A DNA stretch of 64,000 nt. Origin: Kudoa neothunni (lineage: Eukaryota; Animalia; Cnidaria). This document shows, one piece after another, positions 38,590 to 63,403 of this stretch; positions within the stretch are counted from its first letter, which is position 1; every line of letters begins with the position of its first letter. The stretch covers positions 3,210,656-3,274,655 of the forward strand of contig OZ199838.1 in assembly GCA_964304625.1 (NCBI GenBank), written 5' to 3'. Under the pieces are notes generated by a model. The model saw only the letters and a list, made by a program, of their open reading frames with translations. It was not told where the DNA came from and ran no database searches. The position numbers were made by a program, and so were the translations under genes.

Positions 38590-40966
38590 CAACGGTTCTT
38601 TAACTGGGCTCAATCAACCCCCACAGTTTTCGGCGAACGAGATCTGGGGGGACAATGAAGATATATTTCATCTATTTATTCTTATTTTGGATTGTTTTAT
38701 ATAACTTTACATTAAAAATTTAACATGTTAGGGATTTTACAATTACAAAATTATAGGATTAGTTTTCTAATAAAATGTGTATATAATGTATGAACAGCTC
38801 GCGCCACTAACTTACCTTTCTAAACACAGCATTATTGCTAATAAAGAAGTCAATGTACATGAATCATTTTCCGTGTTATTTTATTTTGTCACTGTGAAAT
38901 CATCGTTGGAATTATTGGGCCTTTTATATATGGATTTAAAAAGGAAATGATCGGACGAATTTAAAAATACTGATTCACGTTTCACGACCAAATGTGGCTT
39001 AAATCAATGCTTACGATTGATAATTTTTGCTTCGATACTTCGCGATTCTAGTTTATTTCAAGCAAAACTAAAAGAATATTTTAAAAAATGCATGAAGATT
39101 AAATATATAAGAACATTAATTTTACTGAGTTCGTTAAAACCGAGCTAAGTATGATGAAAAGTGTACCCTACTCATTTTAAACTTTATTTTATTAACGAAA
39201 ATATATTTAAAAAATATGAAGTTTCATATTTAATTACAAGACAGGGAAGTACATAACATTGGCAAAACACTTGTGAAACCTAGGGCGTTGAAAAGTTGAA
39301 GATGGCCAAAGTCATATTACGAAAATCTGAAGAAAATGAGTTACTTAAATTTTCCATGTCAAATAATACTGCAAATCCAATAAAAATTTTGTCCTCAACT
39401 GGACAAGACGACTGTTTTTCAAATATAAGCCAGCTAATTGTATTAGTTTGCCTTTTAAAAATGACGTGATCCCTGATGAATTATTATTTTTTAAACCACC
39501 AAAAAACAAATAAATTTATGAACGTTTTTTAAGCCACCAACCTTTCGTGAGATATAATTTTAGCTATTTGTGTTGACGGAACCTCAACTATTTTGCTAAT
39601 ATGAAATTGTGGTCTTTCTGCACTTGTAAAATTGAACTTTTCTTATTTTACCGTTACAAATTTTATTATACGTAAGTATGGGTCGATAGAAAAGAATATA
39701 CCACAAAGGTTGGCAAATTCTAAAAAAATTGTGATTAAATGTGTTAATTACGTGAGCGGAAGTGTTATTAACTACCTATTAGGTATTGGACGCATACCTT
39801 TTCAATATATGGATTAGCGATATCCGGTAACTACATTTTACCAAGGCACAACTGGTGCGCTCTATTATTGGTCAGTTAGTGTTGGTCATTTGATAGCGCA
39901 TGTTACGCCAGGCCTTCTTAGACATAACACTACCTTTATTATATAAACTATGTTGTGTAATAGGTTCTAAATTTTAAAAGCACTTATATAATTTTAGTAT
40001 ACGATGACTATCCCGTGGAAAAGTGTTAAATCTTTTTTTGCAATGGAAGCGGAGTTAGCGATTATCTTGTGAGAGTACAATCATTGCAATGCGAAAAATT
40101 TCGATAAGGTCGATTTTTTTCTTATTTCAATGTACGTAACTAGTATTTTTGTTTCCTCTATTGTCTAAATTATAATGAACAAGGAGACAGAGTGACATAA
40201 TTATCGATAAAAGACTGAAAGTATCACGAATAAAATTCTTTATGAAAGCTACGGATGATGATTGACAGTTATACAATCCTTCTACCATTGAGAGAAATTT
40301 GTAATGTTTCCGATAATTCAAGAACTAAATTCATATTCATACTAAATGGGCTGAAACTAACAATTCTAACGCATTTAGATGCATTACTTAAATTTCTCGA
40401 TAAGCACCATTTGTCGAAAAAGTTATACCTCGAGTGTTTAAAAAACCATTTAATTAAAATTTTTCGATGAATAATTCTAATTAAAAAAATATTGACAAAA
40501 ATCTTGAAATTCAATAAATTTTAGTGCAACGAGGACTTTTTAAAAAGACATCATTTACAATTCTCTGGTGCCACAGAAACGAATGATACTCCCTTATTTC
40601 TAGAGGCTCTGAAGGTATTTATAATTTTTGCCATTGGTTCCAACATATCCTTGCGAACATTTTTTTGAGATTAATCCGCCTCAAGTATGAGGCAAGTACA
40701 AAAATTTCCTGTGAAAGCGATATGCGAATACATTCCATGACAATGTCGCTTATTTCACATTAATCTCTAAAAACAATAACGGAAATCTCGTTGATAATAA
40801 ATATTTTTAGATTTTGTATTGATATTTTATTTTGTTGACCTGCCATTTTTTCAAGAATAATTCTTTATTCTTTAAGTAACTGAAAATATTATTTTCCAAA
40901 ATTAAATTAACAAAACATTTACACAACGGTAATTTTAGATACATTTTAAAAGGTTAAGAACCAGTG
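38590..40966 (+). mobile_element. Ancient hAT (Buster/Charlie-like) relic
   Basis: Ends CAACGGTTCTTTAAC and GTTAAGAACCAGTG. Relic motifs ICVDGT and PTYPCE. No intact ORF. Confidence 0.6.
39778..39928. mobile_element. 151-bp insertion with 7-bp TSD, present only in copy 1
   Basis: Flanked by ACTACCT at 39771-39777 and 39929-39935. Empty site in copy 2 at ~54452. Confidence 0.75.
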
Positions 40967-41886
40967 AAATAGACTCATGCTTTTTAAGACTAAAATTTTG
41001 TCTATAATCGACGAAATTATAAATTTTAGTAGGAATTAATATGTTCACTATTTTTCTCTAATCATATAATTGAATTATGTGGTGGAAAATGAAAATTGTG
41101 AGATAAATTAAAAGTAAGAGAATCGTATAGCATCAATTTTTGTAAAATGAATTTATTTGTCCTCCCCCAAAATTCTATTATAAAAATTATCACTAAATCA
41201 AAGAATAAATGGGGGCTAGTACTCTTTTTGAAATACAACTTACCTCATTTTTCGATAAAATTATTGTGATAATCAAGAAGAAAGGGGGTTGGAAAAAGTT
41301 AATTTTATAATAATATAGAATAAAAATTGAATTTTTCGCATTCTTTTATTTTGGACCTTTATCTAAAAGGCCAAACTAGTACAAATATATAGGAAATAAA
41401 AATAATTCAATTTTGTCAAGGTTTAAATTATATTTGTATACTTAAACTTAATTTAGTGATCATTTTGTATAAAATTTGACTTAAATTCCTAAACTGCAAA
41501 GATACAAGAGTCATTTCAGTTATAATTAAAACAGGCATTTAATAAGCAAAATATTAATTATTCAATGGGGGATTTTATGATACACATTGATTCTTTAATG
41601 TTAATGCATTGATCGAACAATTCATCTCATATTTAATTACTGAATGGTTTACTCTACTCATTGTTATTAGTTTTGTTGTTATTATCACATCATACTTAAC
41701 TAGTACAATAAACTCATAATTTCCAAAGATTATTTAAGCAAAAATTATATCGTTAATTTCCTATTCAACTACTCTTTAATAATTAAATATTATAATATTA
41801 TTTACATAATAAACTTAAATATAATTGAATAAACCTATTTAAATAAGTGTATCGACAACTTCCGTGAGTAAATTAAACCAGCTACG

Positions 41887-44779
41887 ATGCAACCATTACC
41901 TCACATTTTTGGAATATGTTTAGTCATTTTATGTAACTACAGGCGTAATTCTAATTGTTACGTAACCAAATTTAGCAAAATGTATTTTACTAAATGGAGA
42001 AGTTCCTGCAAGTCCTGCAGCTCCTGTCCCTGCAACACCTCAAAAAACTCTCAGCTACATTATCGTCAAAGAAAATAGTGAAAATAAGGTTAAAATAACT
42101 CTGAATGGCAATGATTTTGCTTCAAAAAAATGTAACATCCAAAAGTCCGCTAAAACTGACGAAAGTTACGAAGAAATGTATACATGCTCTGGAGATAGTG
42201 GTATTACTGTCTCTGGAAAATGCTATAAAACCTGTCCAACTGATGATAAACTGACCTTTACTCAATTTTCACCAAGGACCAAGTATGTAGCGGTTTTTAC
42301 AGGTGTTGGGGTTGTTTCTGATAGTACCTTTACGAAAGATCAAGGTGGAACAGTTTTTGGGCTCGAACTACGTATATAATTAATTATAATTATATTTATA
42401 TAATATAATATTAGGTTTATTGGTTAATCCGCAAGTAACGATATCAACTACAACTGGAATGAAATTAAAATTATGCTCTATCACCTGGAATCAAGTCGCA
42501 TGTCCCATAGTTTACAAAGGTGTACAATACGCAGGAGGAACTGCTGGAACTAGTTGCACTACTGCAAGTACTACTAACGACGAGGTGGATTTCGATTTGA
42601 TGTTACCTCATTATGAAATGAGATGTGTGCATTATCCCAGTTTTTTTTATAAACTGCAAAACAATTATACGTTAAATAATACGGACGTTTATCAACCCCA
42701 ATATTATGTGAAATTCAATGACACTGGTAAGACCAAATACTTAATAAAGTTCACAAATAAGTTTCCTTTTGAAATATGCCGTTTCAGTATTAAAGAAGAG
42801 TCTAATCCTGTTACATCGTCTACATCCAATGAGTATACTTCAAATTGCGGCGTAACAAATAAAGATTGTTATGCTCCTTGTAATGACGTAGAATTAAATT
42901 TTGAGGCCTCAAAAGTCCTTGTTGAAGTCATGATTCAAACGAGACATTTCTCTTTAGCAAAAAGTGGTGAAAAATACCTTGGTTATATACAAAAGAAATT
43001 TGGTAATAAATCATTATTCGTGCTTTTAAATAATCGTTGTTTAGTCGTGACTGAGACTTCTACTGCTGAAGGGACATTATTGTCTACCTACAAAAATAAC
43101 GGTGTCACTATAAATGGCTTATTATTTAAACCAGATGGCGATACTAAATTTGGAAGTTGCACGGTGACGCATTATGCAGCAGACAAACCGACTCCTAATG
43201 ACGGAGTGCAAGCCAAATGTGGAAATGCTGATACTAACTGTAACCAATGTCCATCAGTTTTAACAATAACAGAATTATCTCCTGGGAAGCCATACATACT
43301 CCTTATTGCAGCTGATACCACAAATAATGTACCGGCTAATTTTAAGGAGAAAATATTCTTTAGAACAGGTAAACAGTTTTAGTATTAAATTTGTTGTAAA
43401 ATATCTTAAGAAAATGATGGTACAACAACATTTTCTTCCGAGAAACCAACGTTAGGAGAGACAACGGCCTCAATCACAGCCTTCTCTCCAGCTGGAGAAT
43501 TGACAACAAGTGACATTACATGCGCCTATTATATTAGTCCGCGCGGAAAGGATGTATATGTTTGTGCTATGTGCATCGACAGCTACCCATGTCGAGGCTT
43601 TTGCAAGGAAACTCAGAATATTGTTGGGTTGAAGCCGGGTACTGAGTACGACCTTAAGGTTGTTGCACATAAAAATAATGGATTCAAAGTACATCAAATT
43701 ACAACAGGTATATTAGCTAAGATATATGGAATGATTCAATTTATAGTAAAATCAACGTTCACACTTACACAGGAATTTGTTGAAAAAGGTTTCAAAATAG
43801 GAGCCACATTGTCTACTCCTGATACTGAGGCTAAATGCCATTACAAAGTGCAAGTTAAGAAAGGAGAACGATATGTGTTAATTCACGAATGCCCACAAGC
43901 ACCAATTTCTCAAAAAGCGACTGGAACCCCCGCCAAAAAATCAAATCTTTCTAAAATTACGGTTGCTAGATCAGCAGCTGATTCAACTACCCTTCGACCC
44001 AGGAAAACTATCTCAAAAGTGCCCACCTATTGCACTGAGCCTCCGTCATGTTCAGAGATATTATTCACCACTAATTATGATCGTTCAAAGAAATATCGTG
44101 TAGTGGTGACTACGGTAGGAGCAGTGGAAGCACATATTGAAATTCCGGAGAGTACAATTTTTGATTTTAATAAAATAAAATTTTGATTATAATATAATTA
44201 TTCTAATTAGATACCCTACCAAAAAGCGAAGATATAACAAAACAAATTATTATAAGTATTGAACGTGATGGAAACAAATTAAAGGTTACATCAGTATTAC
44301 CACAGGAGGTCGCTGAAAGCATTTGTGGATGGGAATTAAGAGATACAACAAATTCTGAGAATGTTTTGGTCAAATCATGCAATGGAGAAAACGATGGAGC
44401 TTGCGCAACCTTTCCTAAATGCAAGGAATTTGAAATCACAAATGTTGAGGATACAAACGATTACCAACTAACAGTTTATGTTAGCAATGCCCCATCAATC
44501 AATGGAAATAGCCTAATTAAGAAAGGTAAATGTGTTTGACGCTCCAATTAATAAATTTGTCTTAGGAGAAAGTTATGACACAATGAAATCAACGTAACTT
44601 AGTATATTTAATTTTTATCACTTATAACATTTATTTAGATCAAAAAAATACCATGTAAAATTAATCTTGTTTATGTATTTATAACTCTTTAATATTATAG
44701 AATAATAATAGTCGCAGCCGCTGTAGGTGTTGTTGTTCTAGCGGCTGTCGTTGTGGTTTTCATAAAGAAAAGGAATTAG
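41887..44779 (+). CDS. Uncharacterised type-I membrane protein with ~7 Cys-containing FN3-like modules (copy 1)
   Basis: Spliced signal peptide MQPLPHIFGICLVILSKCILLNG. FN3-like strands TQFSPRTKYVAV, TELSPGKPYILLIAA and VGLKPGTEYDLKVVA. TM IIIIVAAAVGVVVLAAVVVVFI followed by KKRN*. One extra A in the micro-exon (44639-44654) relative to copy 2. Confidence 0.8.
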
Positions 44780-45429
44780 CCAACTATTTATTATTTAATA
44801 ACAGATTAGACTTGTTGATTAGTAGATTATTTTAATTACTCATTTTTTAAATTTTTATTTCCGTTTCTATCGGAATATTCTTAAAATTTTCAATGTTAGT
44901 ACAATTAATATAGATAATTTTTACTTAATTGACTTATCTAGCTATTTATGCTTATCGTAATATTACATATTTTATTTGTTGTCAAATCTTTTTGAGTTAT
45001 TAAGTATAACAATTATTTTCGTTCATTAAAATTTTAAAAATGTTATAGAGAACCATTATGTTCGTAATAATACAAAATACGGATAGAAAAATCTCAGCAT
45101 TAAAGTAACACTTTTACATAATTTGACGCTCAAACAAATTTTGTTATCAGCCATTGAATATAATAAAGGTAATAAATATTAATTTAAAATCTTTAATATT
45201 GTTTTCATCCATTACTAAATAAGGTCAAAATGTATAATAGTGGCCACATTTTCCGATTAAAGGTTATAATTGGTTCGTAGATTAATCCTGAATTTTTTAA
45301 ACACATTGGCATGAAATATGTTGATCACTTAATGGTGGAAATGAGTGGATTAATTACAATAAAATATTTTTGATCCTAACGTTATGCATTTGATACAATG
45401 TAACACCTAATGCTTGCAGATAAGATAAT

Positions 45430-48400
45430 GGTAATGTATGTGACTCCAGAAAAACACCATATTCCGCGCGTTTTTTTCTTTTACGATTATCAACAATAAA
45501 TTAAAAGAATACGGAGTGAAAATATTGAGCTCAAATTAATTACTTCTAAATTTTTGCCTAATTCTTATTCGGAAACACTCGTAATCTACATCGTTTGCAA
45601 TAAACACCGGAAAATAGCTTATTATTTGCATATTTTATCCTGATTAATACATTATAACCATAATTTATAATTTTCTTAATCTTTAAATACCAAATTTAGC
45701 ATAGTAAACCTTCTAAATAAGCTTATCTAATATTAAGAAATATTGTGTCATCTATCTTTATTTCTAAATGTCAAATTAACTTTTAAAACGTTTATTCACA
45801 TCTATAATTGCTTATTTTAGTTTATAAATTTTTATTTGTACATTGTTATGAGTGAAAAAATTTTTATACACCAATTACTCGCGAAATTGGAACTGACAAT
45901 AATTATATTAATCGAATATTGATATTTTTGGCTACAAAATTGAAGAAAGACATTAATAAAAAATATTTTAGTATGTATTTAGTTTATTTTTTATGTCAAC
46001 ATTATTCTTTGAAACAACTACTATGTTATGAACACGCAGTTGAAGTGTTATTCAATATATTGAACTATCGAATTTATTCATTTAAAATAAATTAGAATTA
46101 ACCTGATTTATTTTCACTCGAAAAATTTAACCCAAAAAATTTATTATTTATATATTTAACTTCTAAGATAAAATTTCTAATTATACGTCCTCTGACATTT
46201 ATTACATTAAATACAACAAATAAAAACACATTTATATAGTGTGATAGACTTATTAATAATTACATTAGTATAGTAATATAATTTTTGTTAGTATATTATT
46301 TAAAAGTTGAAATTTTTCTCCCGTAATTGATCGAAACCATTCTTCGCACAAATATTCGGGAAAATTATTGAATGAAACACCCCGTTTAATTCGGGAAAAC
46401 CTTGTTTTAATTCTCCCCCAACAAGCTTCTATGGTGTTTGTATGGGCACCGTCCCTGACATATTCAATTGAATGATTAATTTTTGGCAGTGTCTATTTTG
46501 CCGGACGCGCTTTTTCTCTTAAAATAATAATTCAATCGCTACAATTTTTTCCTAAAAATATCTTTTATAAATGCAGAATATAAATTTAGTTTCATTAATT
46601 CAGTGACGAATTTTAACATAGCTAATTTGTATCCATAATATCCAAATGAAAATACAGTAAAGTAAAACTATTTGGCCAATTCGTATTTAAAATTTTTATA
46701 ATTAGGTAAATGTTTTTATCAGATGATTGATACACCACTAAAATTTAATAAAATGCTGAGTATTCTACTTTAAATAATAAATGTTTGAAATTTTCTTGTA
46801 TTGCAACGCCAAATAATTGTGACTGTTTAACTTCCACATAAAATTATATTTGAATATAATATATCGATACTGGTGTTGTTATTATTACTACTATCATCAT
46901 TACCATAATCATAATTTTCTTTTTTTTCTTAAACCAATAACTGTTTGAAATACACCTTTTGGTCTACCTCTCAATTTCACTACTGTTGGCAGCTTAATTC
47001 CTATAATTTTATGAATTTAGCAAAATGGACAAAAGATACACACCCTTCAAAGATGGATTTTTAGTTGTGGTATCATCTACAATATTCGGGATCTCCATAT
47101 CAATTATTGATGATGGAACATTATCATTAACTGCTTCTAGTATATCCTCATTCTCTAATCGTGATTCCTCAGTAACTAAACACGAAATAAAAATTCTACT
47201 AAAGACAATATCATTAATTACATGTTGGGATTGAAATCTCTTGATTGTTTATGATGACAGATTCAGACATTAACTTGAACTAAATTAAGTTGATATATGA
47301 ATAGTGGAAAAAATAGTCACCTTATCCAGAGAATCCCCATTGGAAATAAGAGAGATTAATTCACCTAAAATCTTTTTTAATGAATCATATTGACTCCCTG
47401 TTTTTTCAGACCCTAGCGAAGCTATTTTCTTACAAAGAATTTCTAGCTCCCTGTATCGCTTTAAAGCAGAATTCGGAACAGGGCACTGACTCGAAATTTC
47501 TGTAATACTTGGTTGCACACAACACGAAGGATTTTGAAGATATAAATTCATGTTCATTATTTTTCTAGCGTAAATAATATGCCTACATGGTAACTCCATA
47601 CTTACGTAGAAACAACATGTACAACTATTGGGATCAGGATTGGCATAGGATTCGATATGATTATTTATTTCATCTTGCATAATATTATACGCATATGAAG
47701 TCAACAATGTTTTATATTGTTCGTTAATGTCTGAATTTAATTTCTCAACAGTTTGGGTTGTCCACTCTCTAACTGCTTTATTCTCACGCTCAGTCCTCAT
47801 ACTTGATAAATAAATAAGCAGATCGCTGAAAAAGACTTCAATTGTTGAGAATTTTTTTATGATTTGTTTAATTTTGGAATTTATGCATTCTAATCGATTA
47901 TTTGTTCTATTTAAAAAAGTACCCTTTAGGTTCATGTATGCCGGGCACCATTCATGTTTGATTGGATCCCAAGATTTATTATAATAAGTAATGATTTTTT
48001 GTTACATGTATTATTTAACAATTCATGGTAATTTTCATAAATTTTTGGATCATTGGTATAGCAAAGCTTTTGAATCAACTCTAAGGCAGTTTTTCTTTCG
48101 GCTTTGTTTATTCCCATTCTTAATGTAGAGATTTCTCTCCCAAATGTTCTTAAGACATGGTACAGGCATAAGTTTGTACTTACGTTAGGAAATATAGATC
48201 TTATAGAGTTTCTTTCAATCATGTCTTTATCCGTAATGAAACAAACTGTTTTGGTTGACATTTCCTCGTTATGTTTAAGTAGAGATTGACATAACCAGGT
48301 AACAGTCACGGTACTCTCCTCAGATAAAAGAGCAATAGCTCCTATTTGACTTTGCCCAAAGGAATCGATAAACAGACATATATACAATGGCATACGATTA

Positions 48401-50904
48401 TTGATTAATTTATAAGTGGCATCCATAAATACTAGTTCGGGAAATTTTTTAATAACGTTTTTCATATAAAGGTCTTGGAAAAATATTCCAGTCATTTCAT
48501 TGGAGTTATTGTACAATATTTCGATAGTTGCATTTGGGTGAGAATTTTTTATTGAATTAAACAATTCCGAAATATCTGACGAAACATTTTTTTTCAGTGT
48601 TTGGATATAATTATGGATTTGCTTCAACGAAACCTTTTTTTGTGATTGGTTCATGATTTCTACTTGTACTCTTTTTAAATTTCCATCATAAAAATGAACA
48701 TTTTTTATAAGATCCTTGCTTTCTTCATCTAATTTTCTATTCATCGGTAAAAAATCCCTAAAATGCTCATTTCTGTTGCAGCTGTGAGTAAGATCCAATT
48801 TTCCAATAACTAACATATTCATGTTTTTAGGAACTCGCAGTGTAATGAAGAAATTGCAACCACTTTTATGGTTGTTGATTTTTTCTCCTTCCCAGCACTT
48901 TTAGATTGTATCTGAATTCAAATTAATTACATCAATTTTTATATAGATAATTACATTTTTACCACCATGAACACAACAAAAAGTGGCTTCATAATAAACA
49001 AGATCAGAGTTCATGTCTCTATCAAATTTTTTTAGGGCAGTTGAGATTTTTCTAGAGTCTTGGATCCAGTAACAAAAGTTGTTCCGCTTTGAGTACTTAT
49101 CCATGAATTCTTTAGCCTTTTCAAAGTTTGTAAATGCATTTCCGACCATAGGTTCAGATGTAATATCCTGAATTAGTAGTGTTTGATCAGACTCTCCTTC
49201 CATAATGATTCTACTCGCGACCATCAATGTTTTAACCGTACTCAAGAAGGTATTTTACTCGTTTATGGTTCTGTAACACATTAAATTAGATTAATTACGA
49301 AAATAATATAGATTTATAAAAAATTTAATGTCATTTATAATGAAACTTATGAATGAGTTTAAAATATCCTCAATGTATTTTGATACCTAATTATTAATTA
49401 AAAGATAAATGAAACTAAATTTATATTCTGCATTTATAAAAGATATTTTTAGGAAAAAATTGTAGCGATTGAATTATTATTTTAAGAGAAAAAGCGCGTC
49501 CGGCAAAATAGACACAGCCTTAATTTTTATGACTGTAGCCAAGTGAATTCAGGTTACTATAGGCTCTCCATTCATCACTACAAATGGCAGATTCTTTAAG
49601 AAACTCATTTTGGATGATTGGAATAAGAGTTCCACGGTCTCTTTTCTGAACGTAGAAATAACGGACTTTCATGAGTTGCCTTTTCCCATCGTCACATATC
49701 TTGCAAAGACAAAGTCCGAAAACCCAAGGGCGTCTACACGATCTCCGTATCTCTCCCGTCTCTTTCTCGTGTCTCCTATATTCATTTAAGAGGCAAAATA
49801 CTGTGATAAATAACCATCAATAGTTTCATCCGAAAATTCGACCTCGGATGGCGAATATTCGCTACCACTTATATCATCATTTCCTGTTGCATTATAAATA
49901 TAGTCAGTGGAAGTGGCAAGAATCTGAGTTGATAGAAATTACTACTCGGTACAATAAATTCAATATCTGATGAAACTTTCCACTTGTCCCCTTTTAAGTA
50001 TCTCCCCCGATTATTCTTCCTCTTGCTGTGGAGAAGAGTCTCATCAATTTCAATGACGTAATCTTCTCCACCAAAGTTTTGCTGCCCCTCAAAATTCGAT
50101 ATGCATATTTTTCTAATCTTGTGAAACCATGAAGAAGTGGTAGGTTTGGAAATATTCATCATCTTACAGGTCGACATGATGGTATTGTCCATCGACTAGT
50201 AATAGAGTATTTTAAATATTTTTTTTGCAGTTAATTTTGTTGTTGAGGTAACGGAACCCATAGAGAAAAACATACCATTTCGAGGGGGGACGCTAGTTTT
50301 GCATCTTAATTACATTAAGTCGTTATTTCACAAAAGATAAGTACTTTTTACAGTTGTAAGTGAAGGAGTAATCAATGTTGTTTCTATCGTAACACGAAGT
50401 ATCGGTCATTGGTCTCCTTATATTTATTTTTCTCTTTTTTAAAACGAAAGTTTTATAATTCCAACACTTAAAACATCTTTCTAGGGCAGCTTTTAGATAG
50501 CCCTTTGATAATGTGTAAAAAAAAACTATCATGGTCATTAATTAAGCAAAAAAATTATCGTCCCCTCTAAAACTTAAAAGCTCCATTATAGCCGTTTCCA
50601 CGTGACAAATAAACGCAGGAAAATTTAATACCGTTGCTAATAAAAATAATATAAAATATAAATTTTTGATAATTAATGAAATAAGCAAATAATAAGCTAT
50701 TTTCCGGTGTTGATTGCAAAACGATGTAGATGGCACGCCTATCCAACTGTGGCCGAATAGGAATTAGGAAAAAATTTATAAGTAATTAATTTGAGCTCAA
50801 TATTTGCACTCGGTATTCTTTTAATTTATTATTGATAATCGTAAAAGAAAAAACGAGAAAAAACGTGCGGAAGATAGTGTTTTTCTGGAGTCACATACTT
50901 TACC
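45430..50904 (-). mobile_element. Merlin element with ~145-bp TIRs, interrupted by a MULE
   Basis: 45430-45572 is an inverted match to 50753-50904, with GG..CC ends. TSD GCAGATAAT (the left copy has a GATAA slippage). Transposase motifs FGGEDYVIEIDET, KRKNNRGR and GAHTNTIEACWG. Confidence 0.85.
46485..49519 (-). mobile_element. MULE/SWIM (ZSWIM3/FAR1-like) transposon
   Basis: Near-perfect ~120-bp TIRs and exact 9-bp TSD TTAATTTTT. ORFs 48901-49245, 47932-48822 and 47285-47935 contain VFMDATYK, ITDKD, LCLYHV, NRTNNRLE and SWIM CTC..LPCRH. Confidence 0.93.
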
Positions 50905-52561
50905 GCAGATAATATTGATTTCTTATTCTTATAGATATAGAATTAATAATAGGCAATCGCTAATGACGAAATATGACAATAAATAAAAAATCATAGTTGT
51001 CACACTCAAATTTTAGGATAAAACAAAGCATGCTTTACTCCATCGATTAAATCATATATCCTGTGGAAATAACTGCGAGGGGCTAGCAGTTATTTAAAGG
51101 ATATATTACAAAAATTATTATCGATAACAAATACAGTGCCGAAAATAACCTACTGGTGGTGAAACAATGATAAATACAAAAAATTGGAATAATCAGCAGG
51201 TTCGATTTTTATCGTGGTCGCTGATTTGGATTACGGCGACTATCCTACATTTTAACCCTAAAACGTGGTTATTGGATATAGTTCTGGAGGAATTATGGGT
51301 AAACTGTCGAATTAACTGTTATCCAAATAAATTATAATCAAATCCTAATAAGATTACATTCATTTACTAGATAATTTTAAATAATTAAATTACTCAACTC
51401 GTAAAATTATTGAATAACATGTACTGCTGCTCAAAGAAACAGTTGTTTAAAGTCAGTTCCCAGTATATTTATCATTCAATTTGAAGATTTCTTTTTGATG
51501 ATATAAATAAAAAAATTTTTTGTTATATTGTGATTTGATGGAAATTTTAAATGATAATAAAATCAAAAATGTGTATCATCAACATATTTTTATTTCTAGG
51601 TATTGATAAAGATAAATAATCTATTGTGGTTTATCTGACTTTTTTGGATTCAATGCACAGATTAAACTATATATGTATATATATAGTTCTCTTTGTGTTG
51701 TATCTCCATTTTATGATGATTAAGACGTTTTCCCTGATTATGTGTTAAATTTATAAACAAATTTGTATAAAATTACTAGTGGACCTTTTACAATCCTTCT
51801 AGCTCATTTGAAGAACAGTAATATTTAGCAAATATATATAAACATGGTTAAATGCTCCTAACTCTGTATACGCTATCAATTACGTTCATGTTTTAAGGTT
51901 ATTAAAGAGTTTTAAATAGAAATTTTTTCAGTTTATAATGATCGATATGTTAAAATGACATTCTAAACAATTATTAGCTTTGAAAATTTATTGTAATTAT
52001 TTGTGTCACAAATAATTATAACTCAAACGTCAAGTTTGTAAACCAAAGTAAAAACAATATTTATGCAACTGAACATATTTTAAAAATAGAAATTCATGAA
52101 CTATTTTTAATTTTTTTTATAGACAATTAGTAATCAAACATTAAGAAATCTTTTTACCTACAAATTAAAAATTTAACATGTTAGGGATTTACAATTACAC
52201 AATTATAGGATTAGTTATCTAAAAAAAATGTATACATAATGTATGAACAACTCGCACCATTGACTTACCTTTCTGAACACAGCATTATTGCCAATAAAGA
52301 AGTCAATGTACATGAACCATTTTCCGTGTTATTTTATTGTGTCACTGTGAAATCATCGTTGGAATTATTAGGCCTTTTATATATGGATTTAAAAAGGAAA
52401 TGATCGGACGAATTTAAAAATATTTTTTCACTTTCACGACCTAATATAGCGGATATTAATGCTTACATTGGATAATTTTTGCTTCGATATTGGGAGATTC
52501 AAGTTTATTGCCAGCGAAACTAAACGAACATTCAAAAAAAAAAGCATGGAGATTAAATATA

Positions 52562-53784
52562 CAGTATTTCACGATCAAGATGCAAAAATAGTAAACCAAC
52601 AAATTTTATAGTTAAATAATAGTTTTTGTATTAATTGTTAATGGGGTTCTTAAGCAGTGATGCTGAAAAGTAAGATTTTGAATGTCTCACATAGCTTTGA
52701 CAACTGGGTTTCGGTTATTTGGGTCGGACTATTTTCCATACATTCAATCAGCTCATCATGTGTTTTTGGTGCCATCCTTTTAACAATTGATTTCAGTTGC
52801 CCGAAAACTTCTCCAGTTGGGTTAAGGAAAGTTGAATACGGCGGTAGTAGTAAGAGCTTATGAGGACTGCTTTCTATCAAATTTCGAACACTCTCAGTCT
52901 TATGGAAAGCTACGTTATCCATAACCAAAATAGCTTTATCGACAGAATTCGCCTCCAAATTTGCAAAAAGATCTTCTAGAAATGACGAAAACACAGCTGG
53001 TTCACGCCCCCCTTGTGAATTTTAAAATTCAAAATTTTTTTGTCACCCATCGCCGCTATTAATGATATGTTTTGAGATCGGATGTATTTGACCTTTAAAT
53101 TTGTTCTCGTCCCAGAAAGGGATCTACCTTGGGAACGACGGGTTGATAGGGAAAATCCTGATTCATCGATATACAATATTTCCGAATACCTAGGTTCCAA
53201 TCTTATGAATTCGTTTACATAACTAAGAAATATTAGATAAAATATATAGATCAATACATCACTCGAATCGTAATGAAACTCTTTCAGAACTCTATTAATA
53301 GTTTGACGAGAAGCGCGAATAGAAAATTTTTGAAAGAGCTTCTCTGATAACTGATTGAATGTCAGCGTAAAGTTATCATCTACCTCTGTAAGTAAAAATT
53401 GTTTGTGCACTTCACTCAACATTCAGCGGCGATCTCCTCCAGTTGCCAACCTTTTGAACGAGCCGGTGTCATTGAATCTCTTCACTATTCTACTTACTGT
53501 AGATTCGGGAATGTTTAATGACTCTGAAATTTGACGATTCGTCTTTCCAATCTTAATTATTTTAATAATCATTTAAAATTTGTGCTCACTTCGACATGGT
53601 GAGCAATTTTAGCCCTATTTTTATTTTTGGCACTAACAATCTCGTATTTTCTCTTAATAGAATTATTATTTTCAATTTGCTCAGGCATGCTTTTATGGTC
53701 TTAACTGGAGGAAAACGTGAAAATGCGCGTGCAATTTGCATCTTGAACGATTGAACATGTTTGCAACTTGATCGTGAAATACTG
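52562..53784 (-). mobile_element. Tc1/IS630 element, degenerate
   Basis: TA|CAGTATTTCACGATCAAG ... CTTGATCGTGAAATACTG|TA. Motifs YIDESGF, VMDNVAFH, LPPYSTFLNP. Empty TA site in copy 1 (~39105). Confidence 0.93.
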
Positions 53785-54863
53785 TATAAGAACATGATTT
53801 TTACTAAGTTTGTTAAAACCAAGCTAAATATGATGAAAAGTGTACCCTACTCATTTTAAACTTTATTTTATTAACGAAAATATATTTAAAAAATATGAAG
53901 TTTCATATTTAATTACAAGACAGGGGAAGTACATAACATTGACAAAACTCTCGTGAAACCTGTGGCGTTGAAAATTTGAAGATAACCCAAAGTCATTTTA
54001 CGGAAATCTTAAAAAAATGAGTTACTTAAAGTTTCCATGTCAAATAATACTGCAAATCCAATAAAAATTTTGTCCTCAACTGGACGAGAACGACTGTTTT
54101 TCGAATATAAGCCTGCCAATTGTATTAGTTCACCTTTTAAAAATGATGTCATCCCTGGTGAACTATTATTCCTTATATCACTAGAAAAACAATTAAATTT
54201 GTGAATTTTTTTAAAGCCACCAACCTTTCGTGAGATATAATTTTAGTTATTTGCGTTGACGGAACCTCATCTATTTTGCTAATATGAAATTCTGGTCTTT
54301 CTGCACTTGTGAAATGAATTTTTCTTAGTTTACTGTTACACATTTTATTCTATGTAAGTAGGGGCCGATAGAAAAGAATATACCACAAAGATTGGAAAAT
54401 TCCAAAAAATTGTGATTAAATGTGTTAATTACGTGAGCGGAAGTGTTATTAACTACCTTTATTATATAAACTATGTTATGTAATAGGTTCTAAATTTTAA
54501 ACGCACTTATATAATTTTAATATACAGTGGCTATATCGTGGAAGCGTTAAATCATTTTTTGCAATGAAAACGGAGTTAGCGATTGTGTTGTGAAAGTACA
54601 ATCATCGCAATGCGAAACACTTCGAGAAGATCGATTTTTTTTCTTATTTTAATGTACGTAACTAGTATTTATGTTTCCTCGATTATCTAAATTATAATGA
54701 ACAAGGAGACAGAGTGACATAATCGTCGATAAAGACTGAAAGTATCAAATAAAATTCTTTATGAAAGCTACGGATGGTGATTGACAGTTATACAATCATT
54801 GTACTAATAAGAGATGTATGCAATGCTTCCGATAATCCGCGAACTAAACTCATATTCATACTA

Positions 54864-57220
54864 GAGTCGAGATTCGATATTGTGTAATTTTTGGGACCAA
54901 GCAAAAATTACGCAATATCGAGTCACGTACATGCGCACTTGTAAAAATATTCGATTTAAACTTGTTTTGTGCGTTTATCCTACTTTAAATCATTGCTAAT
55001 GAAATAAAATAAATATAAGGAATTTTATTTAACTCCATCAGACAAAATTATTAATTTTTATGAAAAAATGAAGTAATTTTAGTTTGATGCCATCTTTGAG
55101 ATATTTTTAAAATTCGATCCATTATCGGATGAAGATCGATGAGTCCAGATGGATCTTCCTGAATAAACACCTTCCTTAATGTACTTACGGCATGCTTTAT
55201 ATCATTTATTGGAACTTTTGATTCTTCCTCATCAGATTCGATTTCATTCTGAATTGGATTCACTGTTGATATTAAGACATCGCCGTTATCATCTTCACAA
55301 GTAGGTAAGTTATTATCATCAAAGTTGGTCTCCCATGTTTCCTCCTCGACTATAAAAATATTAAAATTTCATTGTATATTTATACTCTGTTCATCTTCGA
55401 AAATTTTATCATTTGTTTTCGTCTCTGTATCTCCTATGATAATGGATTAATTTTTGAAGTTCCTATTAGCTTTTACTTTCGCTAAATATGCCCGACTTTT
55501 TAAAACAGTTAACAATGATTTCAGATGGAATACTGTTCCATGCTTCTTGGAGTGTCAAAACTGCATTAAGTAATGTAAATTTATTATTTAACGAATCATC
55601 ACATAATGCCATATGGCTACACAATATTTGTTTGTATCTACTTTTAAGACAGTTAATCACTCCGAAATCGAGTGGCTGTAAAACACTTGTAGTATTTTTA
55701 GGGTAAGAAGAGAAACTTTACTAAAACAAGTGATATCTTTGGGATGTGCTGGACATTGGTCCAGCAAGATTAGTATTTTTCGTTGTTCTGACTCCATTTT
55801 AAAATTTAATTTTTTCATTATCTGGAAAAACATAGCAGAGGTCATCCAAGAATTTTTTTTGGGCATAATACCCATAAGGTAAATTTTTTACCCTCTTGAA
55901 GCGCCTGGGGTTTTGGTATTTCCCAATTACGACTAAGAGCAACTTTTCTCCCCTTAAAGAGCACGATACCTGAAATGTGGCACCAAAAATGCAAAAGAGG
56001 GAGACTCGAATAAGAAATAAGCAAGACAATAATGATACTCTAATCACGAGGTGGTTTATATAGGGTGAGGGGCTGGTGATTCCTATTTTTCCGGGTCTCC
56101 AAAATGGTCGGGGCGCGCCTCCGCCTTTGAACGAAACGGGATTCTCCTCGCCCGGTCTCCTACGTTCGGCTTAGAACCAAAAGTTCCGTAAGCAACTCGT
56201 AGGTCTAAGACTAGAGCTGTCGTGGTGGAGAACCCGGGTTCAAACAAGGTTTGGATTCAGAAGGAAATAGTTTGTAAGTGTTGACCCCGCGGCCGCCCGA
56301 ATGTTTCCCGCGCTAAACTGGAGAAGTCGGAGACCCAACAATACCAAAATCGTTATTCTTTTTTTCGATAGCTTTTTATCTTTAATGTCATTTTCTTCTT
56401 TTAATAAATAACTACTGTTCTGTAATTGCTCATAAAACAAACTAGTTTCGTCAATATTGATTATATTTTTGGGCTATATATGCTTATCAAATTTTTATTT
56501 TCATAGATCCACGAATCAATAGACGCAACGTTAGCGCTCGCAGTTTCATTATGAAAATGCTTGAAAATGATTCCAAACCTTTTTTTAAACCCCGCTAGCC
56601 AACCCCTGCTTGCTTTAAAATTTTGAACTTCATTCTTTCTGGCAATTATGGTGGCCATTTCAAGTATTACGTCACCAAAAATAATGTGACCATTGGTGCG
56701 TTTTTTGATAAACCATTCATAAACTTCTTCGTCGATGTTGATAAATCTTCCATTTGAATGCCTCTTCCTATTTCCTGCAACATCTGAACTTTTCAGCTTG
56801 GTTTCATGAGAAAGAATTCTGTCAAGCGTTGAATGTCCTTTAAGAAATAAATTGTTTATCGATTAAAAATAATCATACCACTAAGTTTAAACTTTTCAAC
56901 CGTCATTTTCTTTGCGCCCTTTATTGATTTTATTGAATTGTAATATTGTATCATCCTAATTTTCTCAGAAATTTCACGCTGCTCCCTGGACGTATTGAAG
57001 ATGAAATCACGCAATATCGAATCACGTTAGTAATTTACGTTACGTAATAAAAAGGTTTTAGGCAATACTAAATCAGAGGCACATAGAAAAAATATTTTTT
57101 TATTTTTATTCTATATTATTAATTCAATAAATAAAGTAATGATATAACTCTAAAATTAAATCCTGATGTAAATATCTTCATATAGAAAATCTTAAATTAC
57201 GCAATATCCAATCTCGACTG
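54864..57220 (-). mobile_element. pogo/Tigger (CENP-B-like) element, degenerate
   Basis: TIRs (G)AGTCGAGATTCGATATTG and CAATATCCAATCTCGACTG with TA TSD. Motifs FKASRGWLAGFKKRFGI, SWMTS, ILLDQCPAH. Empty site in copy 1 (~40343). Confidence 0.93.
55971..56340 (-). mobile_element. Solo LTR (370 bp) inserted in the Tigger transposase
   Basis: TG...CA ends, exact 5-bp TSD ATACC and GC-rich composition. TATATAA box on the minus strand. Removing it restores KKRITILV|SCSLRGEKL. Confidence 0.88.
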
Positions 57221-58735
57221 TAAATGGGCCGGAACTAACAATTCTAACGCATTTAGATGCATTACTTAATTTTCTAGATAAGCACCATTTGTCGAAAAAG
57301 TTATACCTCGAGTGTTTTAGAAAACAATTTAATTTAAATTTTTCAATGAATAGTTCTAATTAAAAACATCTTTAATGATATATTTAAATTCAATAAATTT
57401 TAGTGCAACGAGGACTTTTTAAAAAGACATCATTTACAATTCTCTGGTGCCACAGAAACGAATGATACTCCCTTATTTCTAGAGGCTCTGAAGGTATTTA
57501 TAATTTTTGCCATTGGTTCCAACATATCCTTGCGAACATTTTTTTGAGATTAATCCGCCTCAAGTATGAGGCAAGTACAAAAATTTCCTGTGAAAGCGAT
57601 ATGCGAATACATTCCATGACAATGTCGCTTATTTCACATTAATCTCTAAAAACAATAACGGAAATCTCGTTGATAATAAATATTTTTAGATTTTGTATTG
57701 ATATTTTATTTTGTTGATCTGCCATTTTTTCAAGAATAATTCTTTATTCTTTAAGTAACTGAAAATATTATTTTCCAAAATTAAATTAACAAAACGTTTA
57801 CACAACGGTAGGTTTAGATACATTTTAAAAGATTAAAAACCAATGAAATAGACTCATGCTTTTTAAGACTAAAATTTTATGTATAATCGACGAAATTATA
57901 AAGTTTAGTAGGAATTAATATGTTCACTATTTTTCTCTAATCATATAATTGAATTATGTGGTGGAAAATGAAAATTGTGAGATAAATTAAAAGTAAGAGA
58001 ATCGTATAGCATCAATTTTTGTAAAATGAATTTATTTTTCCTCCCCCAAAATTCTATTATAAAAATTATCACTAAATCAAAGAATAAATGGGGGCTAATA
58101 CTCTTTTTGAAATACAATTATTGTGATAAATCAAGAAGAAAGAGGGTTGGAAAAAGTTAATTTTATAATAATGTAGAATAAAAATTGAATTTTTCGCCAT
58201 TCTTTTATTTTTGATGTTTAGCTAAGAAGCCAAACTAGAACAAATATATAGGAAACAAAAAGAATTCAATTTTGTCAAGGTTTAAGTTATATTTGTATAC
58301 TTAAACTTAATTTGGCAATCATTTCACATAAAATTTGGTTTAAATTCCTAAACTGCAAAGATACAAGAGTCATTTCAGTTATAATTAAAACAGGCATTTA
58401 ATAAGCAAAATATTAATTATTCAATGGGGGATTTTATGATACACATTGATTCTTTAATGTTAATGCATTGATCGAACAATTCATCTCATATTTAATTACT
58501 GAATGATTTACTCTACTCATTGTTATTAGTTTATCACATCATACTTAACTAGTACAATAAACTCATAATTTCCAAAGATTATTTAAGCAAAAATTATATC
58601 GTTAATTTCCTATTCAACTACTCTTTAATAATTAAATATTATAATATTATTTATATAATAAACTTAAATATAATTGAATACACCTATTTAAATAAGTGTA
58701 TCGACAACTTCCGTGAGTAAATTAAACCAGCTACG

Positions 58736-61654
58736 ATGCAACCATTACCTCACATTTTTGGAATATGTTTAGTCATTTTATGTAACTACAGGCGTAATTC
58801 TAATTGTTACGTAACCAAATTTAGCAAAATGTATTTTACTAAATGGAGAAGTTCCTGCAAGTCCTGCAGCTCCTGTCCCTGCAACACCTCAAAAAACTCT
58901 CAGCTACATTATCGTCAAAGAAAATAGTGAAAATAAGGTTAAAATAACTCTGAATGGCAATGATTTTGCTTCAAAAAAATGTAACATCCAAAAGTCCGCT
59001 AAAACTGACGAAAGTTACGAAGAAATGTATGCATGCACTGAAGGTAGTGGTGATATTACTGACTCTGGAAAATGCTATAAAACCTGTCCAACGGATGATA
59101 AACTGACCTTTACTCAATTTTCACCAAGGACCAAGTATGTAGCGGTTTTAACAGGGGTTGTTTCTGGAAGTACCGTTACGAAAGATCAAGGTGGAACAGT
59201 TTTTGGGCTCGAACTACGTATATAATTAATTATAATTATATTTATATAATATAATATTAGGTTTATTGGTTAATCCGCAAGTAACGATATCAACTACAAC
59301 TGGAATGAAATTGAAATTATGCTCTATCACCTACAATCAAGTCGCATGCCCCATAGTTTACAAAGGGGTACAATACGCAGGAGGAACTGCTGGAACTAGT
59401 TGCACTACTGCAAGTACTACTAACAACGAGGTGGATTTCGATTTGATGTTACCTCATTATGAAATGAGATGTGTGCATTATCCCAGTTTTTTTTATAAAC
59501 TGCAAAACAATTATACGTTAAATAATATGGACGATATGGACGTTTACCAACCCCAATATTATGTGAAATTCAATGACACTGGTAAGACCAAATATTTAAT
59601 AAAGTTCACAAATAAGTTTCCTTTTGAAATATGGCCGTTTCAGTATTAAAGAAGAGTCTAATCCTGTTACATCGTCTACATCCAATGAGTATACTTCAAA
59701 TTGCGGCGGAGAAATAAAGATTGTTATGCTCCTTGTAATGACGTAGAATTAAACTTTGAGGCCTCAAAAGTCCTTGTTGAAGTCATGATTCAAACGAGAC
59801 ATTTCTCTTTAGCAAAAAGTGGTGAAAAATACCTTGGTTATATACAAAAGAAATTTGGTAATAAATCATTATTTGTGCTTTTAAATCATCGTTGTTTAGT
59901 CGTGACTGAGACTTCTACTCCTGATGCGGTGTTATTGTCTACCTTCAAAAAAAGTGGTGTAACGTTAAATGTGCCTTTATTTAAACCAGATGGCGATATT
60001 AAATTTGGAAGTTGCACAGTGACGCATTATGCAGCAGATAAACCGACTCCTGCTAACGGTGCAGATACAAAATGTGAAGGTTCCGATTCCAACTGTTGAC
60101 ACTAAATGTGATTCAGGCCTTAAACATAAAAGGCCTCTCAAGTGGAAAGCCATACATACTCCTTATTGCAGCTGATACCACAAATAATGTACCGGCTAAT
60201 TTTAAGGAGAAAATATTCTTTAGAACAGGTAAAACAGTTTTAGTATTAAATTTGTTGTAAAATATCTTAAGAAAATGATGGTACAACAATATTTTCTTCA
60301 GAAGCACCAACGTTAGGGGAGACAACGGCCTCAATCACAGCCTTCTCTCCAGCTGGAGAATTGACAACAAGGTGACATTACATGCGCCTATTATATTAGT
60401 CCGCGCGGAAAGGATGTATATGTTTGTGCTATGTGCATCGACAGCTACCCATGTCGAGGCTTTTGCAAGGAAACTCAGAATATTGTTGGGTTGAAGCCGG
60501 GTACTGAGTACGACCTTAAGGTTGTTGCACATAAAAATAATGGATTCAAAGTACATCAAATTACAACAGGTATATTAGCTAAGATATATGGAATGATTCA
60601 ATTTATAGTAAAATCAACGTTCACACTTACACAGGGAATTTGTTGGAAAAAAGGTTTCAAAATAGGAGCCACATTGTCTACTCCTAATACTGAGGCTAAA
60701 TGCCACTACAAGGTTCAAGTTAAGAAAGGGAGAATTGTATACATTAATTCACGAATGCCCACACAGCACCAATTTCTCAAAAAGCGACTGGAACCCCCCG
60801 CCAAAAAAATCAAATCTTTCTAAAATTACGGTTGCTAGATCAGCAGCTGATTCAACTACCCTTCGACCCAGGAAAACTATCTCAAAAGTGCCCACCTATT
60901 GCACTGAGCCTCCGTCATGTTCAGAGATATTATTCACCACTAATTATGATCGTTCAAAGAAATATCGTGTAGTGGTGACTACGGTAGGAGCAGTGGAAGC
61001 ACATATTGAAATTCCGGAGAGTACAATTTTTGATTTTAATAAAATAAAATTTTGATTATAATATAATTATTCTAATTAGATACCCTACCAAAAAGCGAAG
61101 ATATAACAAAACAAATTATTATAAGTATTGAACGTGATGGAAACAAATTAAAAGGTTACATCAGTATTACCAACAGGAGGTCGCTGAAAGCATTTGTGGA
61201 TGGGAATTAAGAGATACAACAAATTCCGAGAACGTTTTGGTCAAATCATGTAATGGAGAAAACGACGGAGCTTGGCGCAACCTTTCCTAAATGCAAGGAA
61301 TTTGAGATCACAAATGTTGAGGATACAAACGATTACCATACTAACAGTTTATGTTAGCAATACCCCATCAATCAATGGAAATAGCCTAATTAAGAAAGGT
61401 AAAATGTGTTTGACGCTCCAATTAATAAATTTGTCTTAGGAGAAAGTTATGACACAATGAAATCAACGTAACTTAGTATATTTAATTTTTATCACTTATA
61501 ACATTTATTTAGATCAAAAAATACCATGTAAAATTAATCTTGTTTTATGTATTTATAACTCTTTTAATATTATAGAATAATAATAGTCGCAGCCGCTGTA
61601 GGTGTTGTTGTTCTAGCGGCTGTCGTTGTGGTTTTCATAAAGAAAAGGAATTAG
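58736..61654 (+). CDS. Uncharacterised type-I membrane FN3-like protein (copy 2), many 1-nt indels (assembly errors or pseudogene)
   Basis: Same exon structure as 41887-44779. Frameshifts are mostly single-base homopolymer expansions. Confidence 0.7.
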
Positions 61655-63403
61655 CCAACTATTTATTATTTAATAAACAGATTAGACTTGTTGATTAGTA
61701 GATTATTTTAATTACTCATTTTTTAAAATTTTTATTTCCGTTTCTATCGGAATATTCTTAAAATTTTTCAATGTTAGTACAATTAATATAGATAATTTTT
61801 ACTTAATTGACTTATCTAGCTATTTATGCTTATCGTAATATTACATATTTTTATTTGTTGTCAAATCTTTTTGAGTTATTAAGTATAACAATTATTTTCG
61901 TTCATTAAAATTTTAAAAATGTTATAGAGAACCATTATGTTTCGTAATAATACACAAAATACGGATAGAAAAATCTCAGCATTAAAGTAACACTTTTACA
62001 TAATTTGACGCTCAAAACAAATTTTGTTATCAGCCATTGAATATAATAAAGGTAATAAATATTAATTTAAAATCTTTAATATTGTTTTCATCCATTACTA
62101 AATAACTTTTTCCTTAATTACATACAGTGTTGGGGATTTTAATTTTATATCCCATTTGACAGTTTAATAAAACCAACTCAATAATTTGTGAGTTATAATT
62201 GTTAGAATATCCCGATTATAATAATGATTAGCAATAATAATCAATATTAACAATAAATTCGTTGAGATCTCCATTTAGAAGTCGATAATTCGAACAACGG
62301 TTGCAGTATCATCATAAAAATTTATTTTCATTCTATATTTCTCGTTTATACAATAGATGAAACCATTTGTTAAAATGCGAAAGTATACCATGTTTCAACA
62401 TCATGCGATTCATTTAATTTCTACGCAGCAATTAATTTTGTTGAACGCTTTCATCGAGTCATGTTATGATTTTTTCCGCTTATAAACCAATATTTCCTAC
62501 AACGAAATTCGTTCCGCTAATCTTAATAATTAATATTTTGAATTCTTAAATAATTATCCTTTAGTTTTTAAAAATACCACCAGACATTAAATTATAACTG
62601 TTTAAATAGCAGTATATCTCGTTCGTATCATCAAAAACGAAAATAATTTCATTACATTATTACTTTATATTTACCAGAAATATCGCTATTTTTAATTTAA
62701 TTTTATCGGTCATTAGGAGTAAAAAATATTTCGTATATTTGAATAATCACGTGATTTTTATTTTCATTATTTTTTTACCTTATATTGATCCAAACTCCCC
62801 CAAAATTCAGGAAATAATTGCTAAAAAGAAAATAAAAAATAATTCTTATTTAATATTTATAAGTTATAACAATTTTTTTATAAAATTGCAACATTAATAG
62901 AGTTTTCACATGCGCGCCCCCAAAAAGATCCTATAATAGGTAAGTTTACGACGTAAATTTTACGTTATTATTCGTACATTTCGGTAAAAAACTTTATTGA
63001 GTTTCTTATTTAAAAAAAATGAACTCTATAAACAATCACAAATATTAAAGTTACTTTTATTCAGGGATGACTTGTATCCCGCCAAAAAATGAAATTTCTG
63101 CCGACCATATTTCTATAAAATTTAAAAAAATGGCGTAAAAATAATATAATTTATATTAATTGCATATTTTGCGCTCATAAAATGCGCAATATTAAGTTCA
63201 TCTACGTAGAATTAAAACTTAAGAATATTTTCTCAATATGAAAATAAATATAACAAATGTACATAAGAAACATGTTTCTAAATTATAATCTCATCGTGAC
63301 TTATTTCATAAATATACTCTTTAATGATTCGAATTCGGAAAGACAAAGCTTAATTCCAGTTCATTTCGAAGGTAAATAACAATCTTCAAAACCTACATTA
63401 AAT

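Follow-up and report, generated by a model that had tools for sequence, protein, structure and literature searches.

A tandem gene pair of Kudoa neothunni as a probable gene-conversion mosaic within a large lineage-restricted surface-protein family

The forward strand of contig OZ199838.1 of Kudoa neothunni (assembly GCA_964304625.1, positions 3,210,656 to 3,274,655) contains two neighbouring and nearly identical genes, A and B, whose product would be a type I membrane protein with a predicted surface location. The whole stretch of 64,000 nucleotides (nt) is referred to as the window, and coordinates without a prefix are counted from its first base. We consider it likely that the two genes are genuine tandem paralogues and belong to a very large family of type I surface proteins that is restricted to the lineage, that the pair represents a conversion mosaic and that copy B is probably intact. 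Gene conversion as the process behind this mosaic is what we infer from the distribution of silent differences along the two genes. The main value of the analysis is corrective: the “hypervariable patches” of the pair are better read as a mosaic, in which old sequence adjoins sequence that was homogenised recently, than as evidence of positive selection. Infection by Kudoa spoils the muscle of fish and is a possible cause of food-borne illness, and we know of no molecule that the parasite presents to its host. The genes and their divergent tracts are:

41887..44779, plus strand: gene A, intact, nine exons, 807 amino acids; all introns GT-AG, module-bounding introns in phase 1
41887-41932, 41976-42371, 42415-43002, 43045-43368, 43411-43707, 43801-44151, 44211-44525, 44566-44593 and 44701-44779, plus strand: exons of gene A
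58736..61654, plus strand: gene B, same structure as A; the assembled sequence has about ten frame-breaking exon insertions of 1-2 nt
42176..42336, plus strand: patch 1 in A (module 1 loops), counterpart in B about 59025-59182; 10 substitutions and in-frame indels of +3 and -6 nt
43017..43285, plus strand: patch 4 in A (module 4), counterpart in B about 59874-60146; 28 of 107 residues differ, one extra codon in B
43821..43934, plus strand: smaller divergent stretch of module 6 (12 substitutions)

The protein of gene A is composed of a signal peptide, a Pro/Ala/Thr-rich N-terminal linker, seven modules, a stalk, a transmembrane (TM) helix and a tail. A self-comparison of the window revealed a direct repeat of 4.9 kb with 95.1% identity (40343-45222 and 57221-62105), in agreement with the two near-identical paralogues described in the initial annotation, which had been made from the sequence of the window. 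The proximal promoter, the signal peptide, the TM exon and the 3' flank of A and B are nearly the same, and many segments of the gene reach about 99-100% identity. Substitutions are found at 2 of 468 intron positions and 107 of 2417 exon positions, and they amount to 53/1512 nt (patchy) in the proximal upstream flank and 7/451 nt in the 3' flank. Their distribution within the exons is conspicuous, since 61 of the 107 coding substitutions are located within 43060-43300, a stretch of 241 nt in module 4 that comprises 10% of the coding sequence (binomial p 3e-33). A second, weaker cluster is present at 42176-42336 (p 0.002). The concentration of changes in coding patches of modules 1 and 4 had thus been recognised correctly, and all peptide pairs quoted as examples could be reproduced from A and B. 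The cysteines are kept in both copies and four A-B indels are in frame (+3, -6 and +9 nt and one additional codon in the module 4 patch), likewise as described. The tract of patch 4 begins inside the preceding intron of 42 nt, which carries two substitutions (43017 and 43032), and the remaining introns are free of them (0/426 nt). In sliding windows the A-B identity in patch 4 falls to 62-83%, which is as low as that between either copy and the paralogues on chromosome 3; elsewhere in the gene, the latter share about 79% identity with A.

The key evidence comes from the synonymous sites. Substitutions between A and B were counted according to Nei and Gojobori in the frame of A, with pN and pS as the proportions of differing nonsynonymous and synonymous sites and dN/dS as the ratio of nonsynonymous to synonymous divergence:

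Outside the patches: nonsynonymous 11, synonymous 16; pN 0.007, pS 0.035, dN/dS 0.19
Patch 1: nonsynonymous 8.5, synonymous 1.5; pN 0.071, pS 0.041, dN/dS 1.77, not significant (p 1.0)
Patch 4: nonsynonymous 36.5, synonymous 18.5; pN 0.205, pS 0.351, dN/dS 0.50

Synonymous divergence is about ten times higher in patch 4 than outside the patches (pS 0.35 versus 0.035; Fisher p 9e-11), and protein-level selection therefore cannot be the source of this excess. When the pieces of B were translated separately in their respective frames, module 4 had 18.3 synonymous differences at 73 sites and 37.7 nonsynonymous differences at 248 sites (pS 0.25, pN 0.15). Silent-site divergence along the A-B pair is thus lowest in the introns (0.4%), intermediate at the synonymous sites outside the patches (3.5%) and highest at those of module 4 (25-36%). 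This heterogeneity is significant, and it is replicated in three other pairs of the family. The phylogenetic trees of the single modules show the same unevenness in their branch lengths. The two copies group as sisters throughout; their terminal branches measure 0.007-0.02 in modules 2-3 and 5 but 0.12-0.13, roughly tenfold more, in module 4. The uneven silent divergence, the overlap of the divergent tract with an intron and the branch lengths indicate that segments of the A-B pair differ greatly in their coalescence time.

The surroundings of the genes provide a second line of evidence. Self-BLAST revealed that the full duplicated unit is larger than the gene and its immediate flanks, with a length of 7.4 kb (37800-45222 versus 51258-62105), and that the A-B identity of its upstream part (88.5-92.8%) is below that of the gene body. 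The blocks and the insertions that separate or interrupt them are:

37800..45222, plus strand: duplicated block, copy A (upstream flank and gene A); self-BLAST segments 37800-39777 and 39929-40344 at 88.5-92.8%, 40343-45222 at 95.1%
51258..62105, plus strand: duplicated block, copy B (self-BLAST), split by two insertions
about 52561-53785: Tc1/mariner-like insertion in the upstream part of block B, with a DDE_3 domain match at 52976-53419
54863-57221: insertion of 2.36 kb in the upstream part of block B (self-BLAST)
45430..50904, minus strand: MULE/SWIM transposon with inverted ends between blocks A and B (self-BLAST; MULE, ZSWIM and SWIM domains)

The simplest reading of a flank that is about 10% diverged next to a near-identical gene body is that the tandem duplication is older and that gene conversion has since made the gene bodies uniform. 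In this scenario the block would have been duplicated in tandem at a time that is not recent, as judged from the flank, and conversion between the two neighbours would then have overwritten most of the gene including the introns. The loop-coding stretches of module 4, and more weakly those of module 1, would have stayed or become divergent. The divergent stretches of A and B are the same that are most variable across the whole family, and the variable loops may accordingly be those that were left unhomogenised.

Comparable mosaics are present in other pairs of the family, which are designated here by their locus numbers:

L014/L045 (neighbours on chromosome 3): pS 0.34 in module 1 and 0.31 in module 4, 0.05-0.10 in the other modules
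L003/L019: pS 0.27 in modules 2-3, 0.000 in module 6 (about 80 synonymous sites)
L037/L043: pS 0.35 in modules 2-3, 0.000 in module 6 (about 86 synonymous sites)

One example is the pair L014/L045 (G000:C3:1893635-1894621 and 1902391-1903008), in which modules 1 and 4 have diverged by 16-20% and modules 2-3 and 5-7 by 1-3%. This independent tandem pair repeats the pattern of A and B in the same two modules, showing that the mosaic recurs beyond A and B. Another example is the complete identity of module 6 in L003/L019 and L037/L043 at a pS of 0.27-0.35 in modules 2-3, which represents a clear tract of recent membrane-proximal conversion. Constant membrane-proximal modules, variable distal modules and a segment-wise homogenisation thus characterise the whole family.

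Several observations weigh against the proposed history of duplication and conversion. The gene segments exhibit no phylogenetic incongruence, because A and B are sisters everywhere and differ in their branch lengths alone. A donor for either version of patch 4 was not found in the assembly, neither by a genome-wide DNA search nor by k-mer sharing with 46 loci, and the best non-self match has an identity of 73-81%. The lack of a donor above 81% identity excludes a recent import from an assembled paralogue, and an escape of the patch from homogenisation is what we infer in its place. At 0.25-0.36, the synonymous divergence of patch 4 is larger than the divergence of the non-coding flank (about 0.10), so that a single duplication date for patch and flank needs an extra assumption, such as a faster mutation of the GC-richer exon sites or a flank that was homogenised in part. 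Outside the patches, synonymous sites (16/451, 3.5%) are more diverged than introns (2/468, 0.4%; p 5e-4), which is not predicted by a simple homogenisation. All synonymous A-B differences are changes between G/C and A/T, and the AT-richer introns together with splice signals may explain part of the excess. A pairwise dN/dS below one is compatible with positive selection at a few loop sites. Finally, the reads come from the same fish sample and were used as de Bruijn contigs, whose paths switch between A and B states and cannot phase the two copies. The sequence is present in only one infected fish sample, and two raw-read runs under the same species label, presumably that of the host, gave no matching reads.

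The foremost alternative is that positive (diversifying) selection on exposed loops created the patches on a young duplicate, in the manner of variant antigens or allorecognition receptors, and it appears unlikely. The initial annotation had proposed diversifying selection or segmental gene conversion. Conversion is favoured by the silent heterogeneity and by the other pairs, and selection is disfavoured by a dN/dS of 0.41 for the whole coding sequence and, with the pieces of B in their own frames, of 0.56 for module 4 (loops 0.62, strands 0.34). A dN/dS at or below one had been named beforehand as an argument against selection, and the ratios stay below one overall, in module 4 and in its loops. 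The statement that the substitutions mostly change amino acids is correct for the raw counts, but per site the synonymous change is higher, and in patch 4 the nonsynonymous change per site is below the synonymous one (odds ratio 0.49, p 0.04). The tenfold divergence of the synonymous sites in this patch also argues against selection as its origin, even though exon divergence exceeds intron divergence. Selection would fit the position of the patches, which lie for the most part in loops and in columns that are hypervariable across the family while the cysteines stay fixed. It would likewise fit the independent pair L014/L045, in which the divergence again falls on modules 1 and 4. It would also fit the ratio of 8.5 nonsynonymous to 1.5 synonymous changes in patch 1, but this excess is not significant. 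The family provides a similar picture. In module 4 the family-wide dN/dS is 0.18 in strands and 0.58 in loops, the value for loops indicating relaxed or near-neutral evolution, with positive selection not demonstrated. The closest family pairs have ratios near 1 in the loops, and the value of 0.95 for the most variable columns is biased upwards, these columns having been picked for their variability.

Two further alternatives depend on the quality of copy B. The K. neothunni genome is a meta-assembly of HiFi reads at a k-mer coverage of about 7x (PMC12239612), and consensus errors such as insertions are therefore to be expected. Compared with A, the assembled B shows 26 insertions (1-2 nt each) against only two one-base deletions, and most of the insertions repeat the adjacent base. 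Of these indels, 10 are located in exons, 7 in introns, 8 in the 3' flank and 3 in the upstream flank, and within the 3' half there is about one every 90 nt. The assembled copy contains several stop codons besides the frame-breaking indels, and the protein of its patch 4 runs on through three frames (...SNC / DTKCDS / ALNIKGLSS...). The initial annotation had applied an “indel correction” in its comparison of the peptides, but had passed over the roughly ten frame-breaking exon insertions that made it necessary. A B-specific read contig (run X2) spans 59976-60176 with 44 sites that distinguish A and B, and it shows no mismatch to B. It is two bases shorter than the assembled B, which is exactly the number needed to join the frames. 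B-type substitutions are found in read contigs at 57271-57481, at 59874/59887, at 60290-60318 and in patch 4. A contig over 61720-62100 is uninformative about the insertions in B, since A and B lack any substitution there. The frameshifts of copy B are probably consensus errors of a low-coverage assembly, and the gene itself is very probably intact.

In the same-sample read contigs, bases that match neither A nor B are present at 59760-59761, 60237, 60240, 61606 and 61922-61937, indicating that the sample contains more haplotypes or near-identical copies than the assembly. Such third-state variants would suit the alternative that A and B are two haplotypes, or co-infecting genotypes, of a single locus that were placed in tandem by the assembler. 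The initial annotation had named misassembled haplotypes as a circumstance that would change its claim; we judge them slightly less probable even than selection. Residual haplotypic duplication, low coverage and the use of purge_dups in the source paper (PMC12239612) add to their case, as does the sequence quality of copy B, which is much below that of copy A. Against a haplotypic origin, the two blocks differ by three large insertions (the MULE element between them and the mariner-like and 2.36 kb insertions in the upstream part of B), and the sequences downstream of A and B are unrelated to each other. Moreover, the flank is about 10% diverged, whereas a low sequence diversity was found in the source paper (PMC12239612), and tandem arrays at similar spacing are usual in this family.

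The least probable alternative is that copy B is a decaying pseudogene with patches of relaxed or neutral change, as its ten or so frame-breaking exon indels and its stop codons might suggest; it is contradicted by a dN/dS of 0.19 outside the patches, by polarised sites that place derived changes outside the patches on both A and B, by an indel to substitution ratio and a 26:2 insertion bias unlike natural mutation, by introns and flanks that are struck by indels at least as often as exons, by the B-specific contig that lacks two of the insertions and restores the frame, and by the version of patch 4 in B, which is nearer to the family consensus than that in A.

The gene structure deserves attention because it is easily missed. 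The introns of gene A are of the GT-AG type with a length of 40-107 nt, and the first of them interrupts the signal peptide. There is about one module per exon between phase-1 introns, with the exception of modules 2 and 3, which share an exon. A short micro-exon for the stalk is followed by the single TM helix (residues 783-803) and a tail of four residues, KKRN. Two introns, 43003-43044 (42 nt) and 43708-43800 (93 nt), have a length that is a multiple of three and are stop-free and in frame, so that a raw scan for open reading frames (ORFs) reads through and hides both. The intron at 43003-43044 can be regarded as certain from the comparison with the family, because most paralogues have an in-frame stop at that place; the intron at 43708-43800 is a putative one. 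Searches and fold predictions were conducted exon by exon, and the joined coding sequence was used for frame continuity and for the placement on paralogue loci.

A genome-wide search for more paralogues, as had been suggested by the initial annotation, was performed with the exon of modules 2-4 and detected at least 127 matching places at E <= 0.001; this count was drawn from 669 first-look candidates, 125 of which were scored. The places form many clusters on all three chromosomes of the 40 Mb genome (40,260,978 bases in four contigs of 17.15, 12.04 and 11.05 Mb and 18,219 bp). A further member is located at G000:C1:3158325-3158909 (L054), about 52 kb upstream of the window, and A and B are therefore part of a looser local cluster. 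Outside this genome, only 20 matches were found among 1.84 billion representative proteins, and the strong ones are all short unnamed fragments of metagenome or Logan contigs. No description of the family was found in the papers searched on Kudoa or other myxozoans. The published annotation of K. neothunni, which comprises only 5,316 protein predictions from protein hints, does not mention it (PMC12239612).

The initial annotation had recognised no described family in the protein, which holds at the sequence level but not for the predicted fold of module 4, a fibronectin type III (FN3) domain. In a Pfam search of the exon ORFs, the gathering score of PF00041 was not reached (best fn3 match 18.0 bits at a cut-off of 25), nor was that of FN3_DSCAM-DSCAML_C (19.8 with 39 needed), and weak fn3 and DSCAM-Fn3 matches were located in modules 4 and 5. 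A match to GP40 in the same search was rejected as chance. The ESM Atlas provided FN3 leads only, all of them below 0.9. The AlphaFold2 model of module 4 (mean per-residue confidence, pLDDT, 75.5) was compared with the PDB by Foldseek, and the top 50 matches are all FN3 domains or monobodies with a probability of 1.0, TM-scores of 0.55-0.69 by target and E-values of about 2e-3. The predicted fold of module 4 is thus the seven-strand beta-sandwich of FN3. The model of module 1 is a less confident beta-sandwich with only weak, generic immunoglobulin (Ig)-like matches. The seven modules of the protein can be described as FN3-like beta-sandwiches with conserved cysteines as staples.

When 17-37 paralogues are aligned, invariant cysteines and framework residues are found next to hypervariable segments, which coincide with the A/B patches. 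The hypervariable segments of module 1 are TCSGDSGITVSGK and GVGVVSDSTFTKDQ, and those of module 4 comprise the N-terminal stretch, the turns and the Cys-rich C'-E region. The length of the N-terminal linker varies widely among the family members, and in one paralogue (L008:2478-3107, minus strand, module 1 exon) it contains a long run of PTPTPTSA-like repeats. These features suggest a mucin-like, possibly O-glycosylated tip. The absence of a signalling domain and the tail of four residues make an adhesive or coat ectodomain most likely for the protein, rather than a signalling receptor, and the family may have a role at the host interface. The gene family is new at the sequence level, but it is of the FN3 type with a predicted surface location, and its mode of evolution is a known one.

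The comparison with known systems is instructive in this respect. With the FN3 adhesion proteins the Kudoa protein shares the predicted FN3 sandwich of module 4, tandem modules with phase-1 introns between them and a single TM helix. It differs in that none of its modules reaches the Pfam gathering score, that most of them have about four conserved cysteines which are absent from classical FN3, that module 1 has only a generic Ig-like sandwich match and that the cytoplasmic tail is confined to four residues. In the var and rif genes of Plasmodium, the VSGs of Trypanosoma and the VSPs of Giardia, we find the same combination of a large, clustered and lineage-restricted parasite surface family that diversifies by gene conversion, with variable distal parts, constant membrane-proximal parts and a mosaic exchange between members. 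The Kudoa family likewise provides a large paralogous repertoire of surface genes, with at least 127 places and a predicted signal peptide and TM helix. However, it has no sequence or fold relationship to these antigens, and its loci are spread over all three chromosomes instead of being confined to chromosome ends. A dN/dS above one in exposed regions, as expected of a variant antigen, was not observed in module 4 (0.56), its loops (0.62), the family-wide loops (0.58) or the most variable columns (0.95). VSP-like and RIFIN/STEVOR-like families have been reported in the myxozoan Sphaerospora molnari (bioRxiv 10.64898/2026.02.11.705288). Very few parasite transcript reads were found in the source data of K. 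neothunni (PMC12239612), and the locus was absent from all RNA runs searched.

Near-identical introns and most exons beside an old, divergent and ligand-facing segment are a feature that tandem duplicates of the major histocompatibility complex (MHC) class II and of opsin or RH genes have in common with A and B. Concerted evolution with retained divergent segments is known from exon 2 of MHC class II and from the primate opsin or RH duplicates, where the retained segment is documented to be under balancing or positive selection. The latter distinguishes them from the Kudoa pair, in which selection on this segment is not documented. The allorecognition proteins Alr1 and Alr2 of Hydractinia are type I membrane proteins with hypervariable membrane-distal domains and clusters of paralogues. 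Their ectodomains are Ig-like (V-set or I-set like), their signalling tails are long and their defining property is allelic polymorphism. They share with the Kudoa proteins the cnidarian origin, the type I membrane topology, variable distal domains and clustered paralogues. The resemblance to Alr receptors drawn in the initial annotation is nevertheless unsupported by domain type or cytoplasmic tail, because the modules of Kudoa are FN3-like instead of Ig-like and the tail is the four-residue KKRN.

A cysteine-stapled FN3-like family of at least 127 places with constant proximal and variable distal modules is the obvious first candidate for the parasite surface, and a variant-antigen or allorecognition function remains hypothetical. 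It is conceivable, though doubtful, that Kudoa possesses hundreds of genes for a variable, FN3-based surface repertoire not known before, in which conversion maintains uniform proximal modules and selection maintains differences between neighbouring genes in the loops of modules 1 and 4. If true, this repertoire would provide Kudoa with a diversified coat for the host interface or immune evasion, and antigenic diversity would have its first molecular candidate among the multivalvulid myxozoans.

The assembly was obtained from yellowfin tuna data and comprises 40.2 Mb in three chromosome scaffolds with a GC content of 30.41% and a median intron length of 49 bp; the mitochondrial contig has 18,219 bp, and the genomes were recovered from contaminated fish data (PMC12239612). 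ARAGORN detected no tRNA on the contig of 18,219 bp, which fits a Kudoa mitochondrion. The window has a GC content of 30.5%, and a scan against Rfam gave no match in it or in the contig of 18,219 bp. The pattern of the nematode spliced leader SL1 had no hit in the genome. The inverted matches of the MULE/SWIM element between the two blocks are located at 45430-45638/50676-50904 and 46485-46599/49405-49519 (self-BLAST). DNA transposons are abundant in the window (1627-2160, 13356-14324, 24250-26434, 47285-49245 and 52650-53422) and comprise a piggyBac-like element (DDE_Tnp_1_7), two Tc1/mariner-like elements (DDE_3, one with a split ORF) and two MULE-like elements (one with ZSWIM and SWIM). Beside them the window harbors ordinary genes for a protein kinase, a spermidine synthase and a mitochondrial porin.

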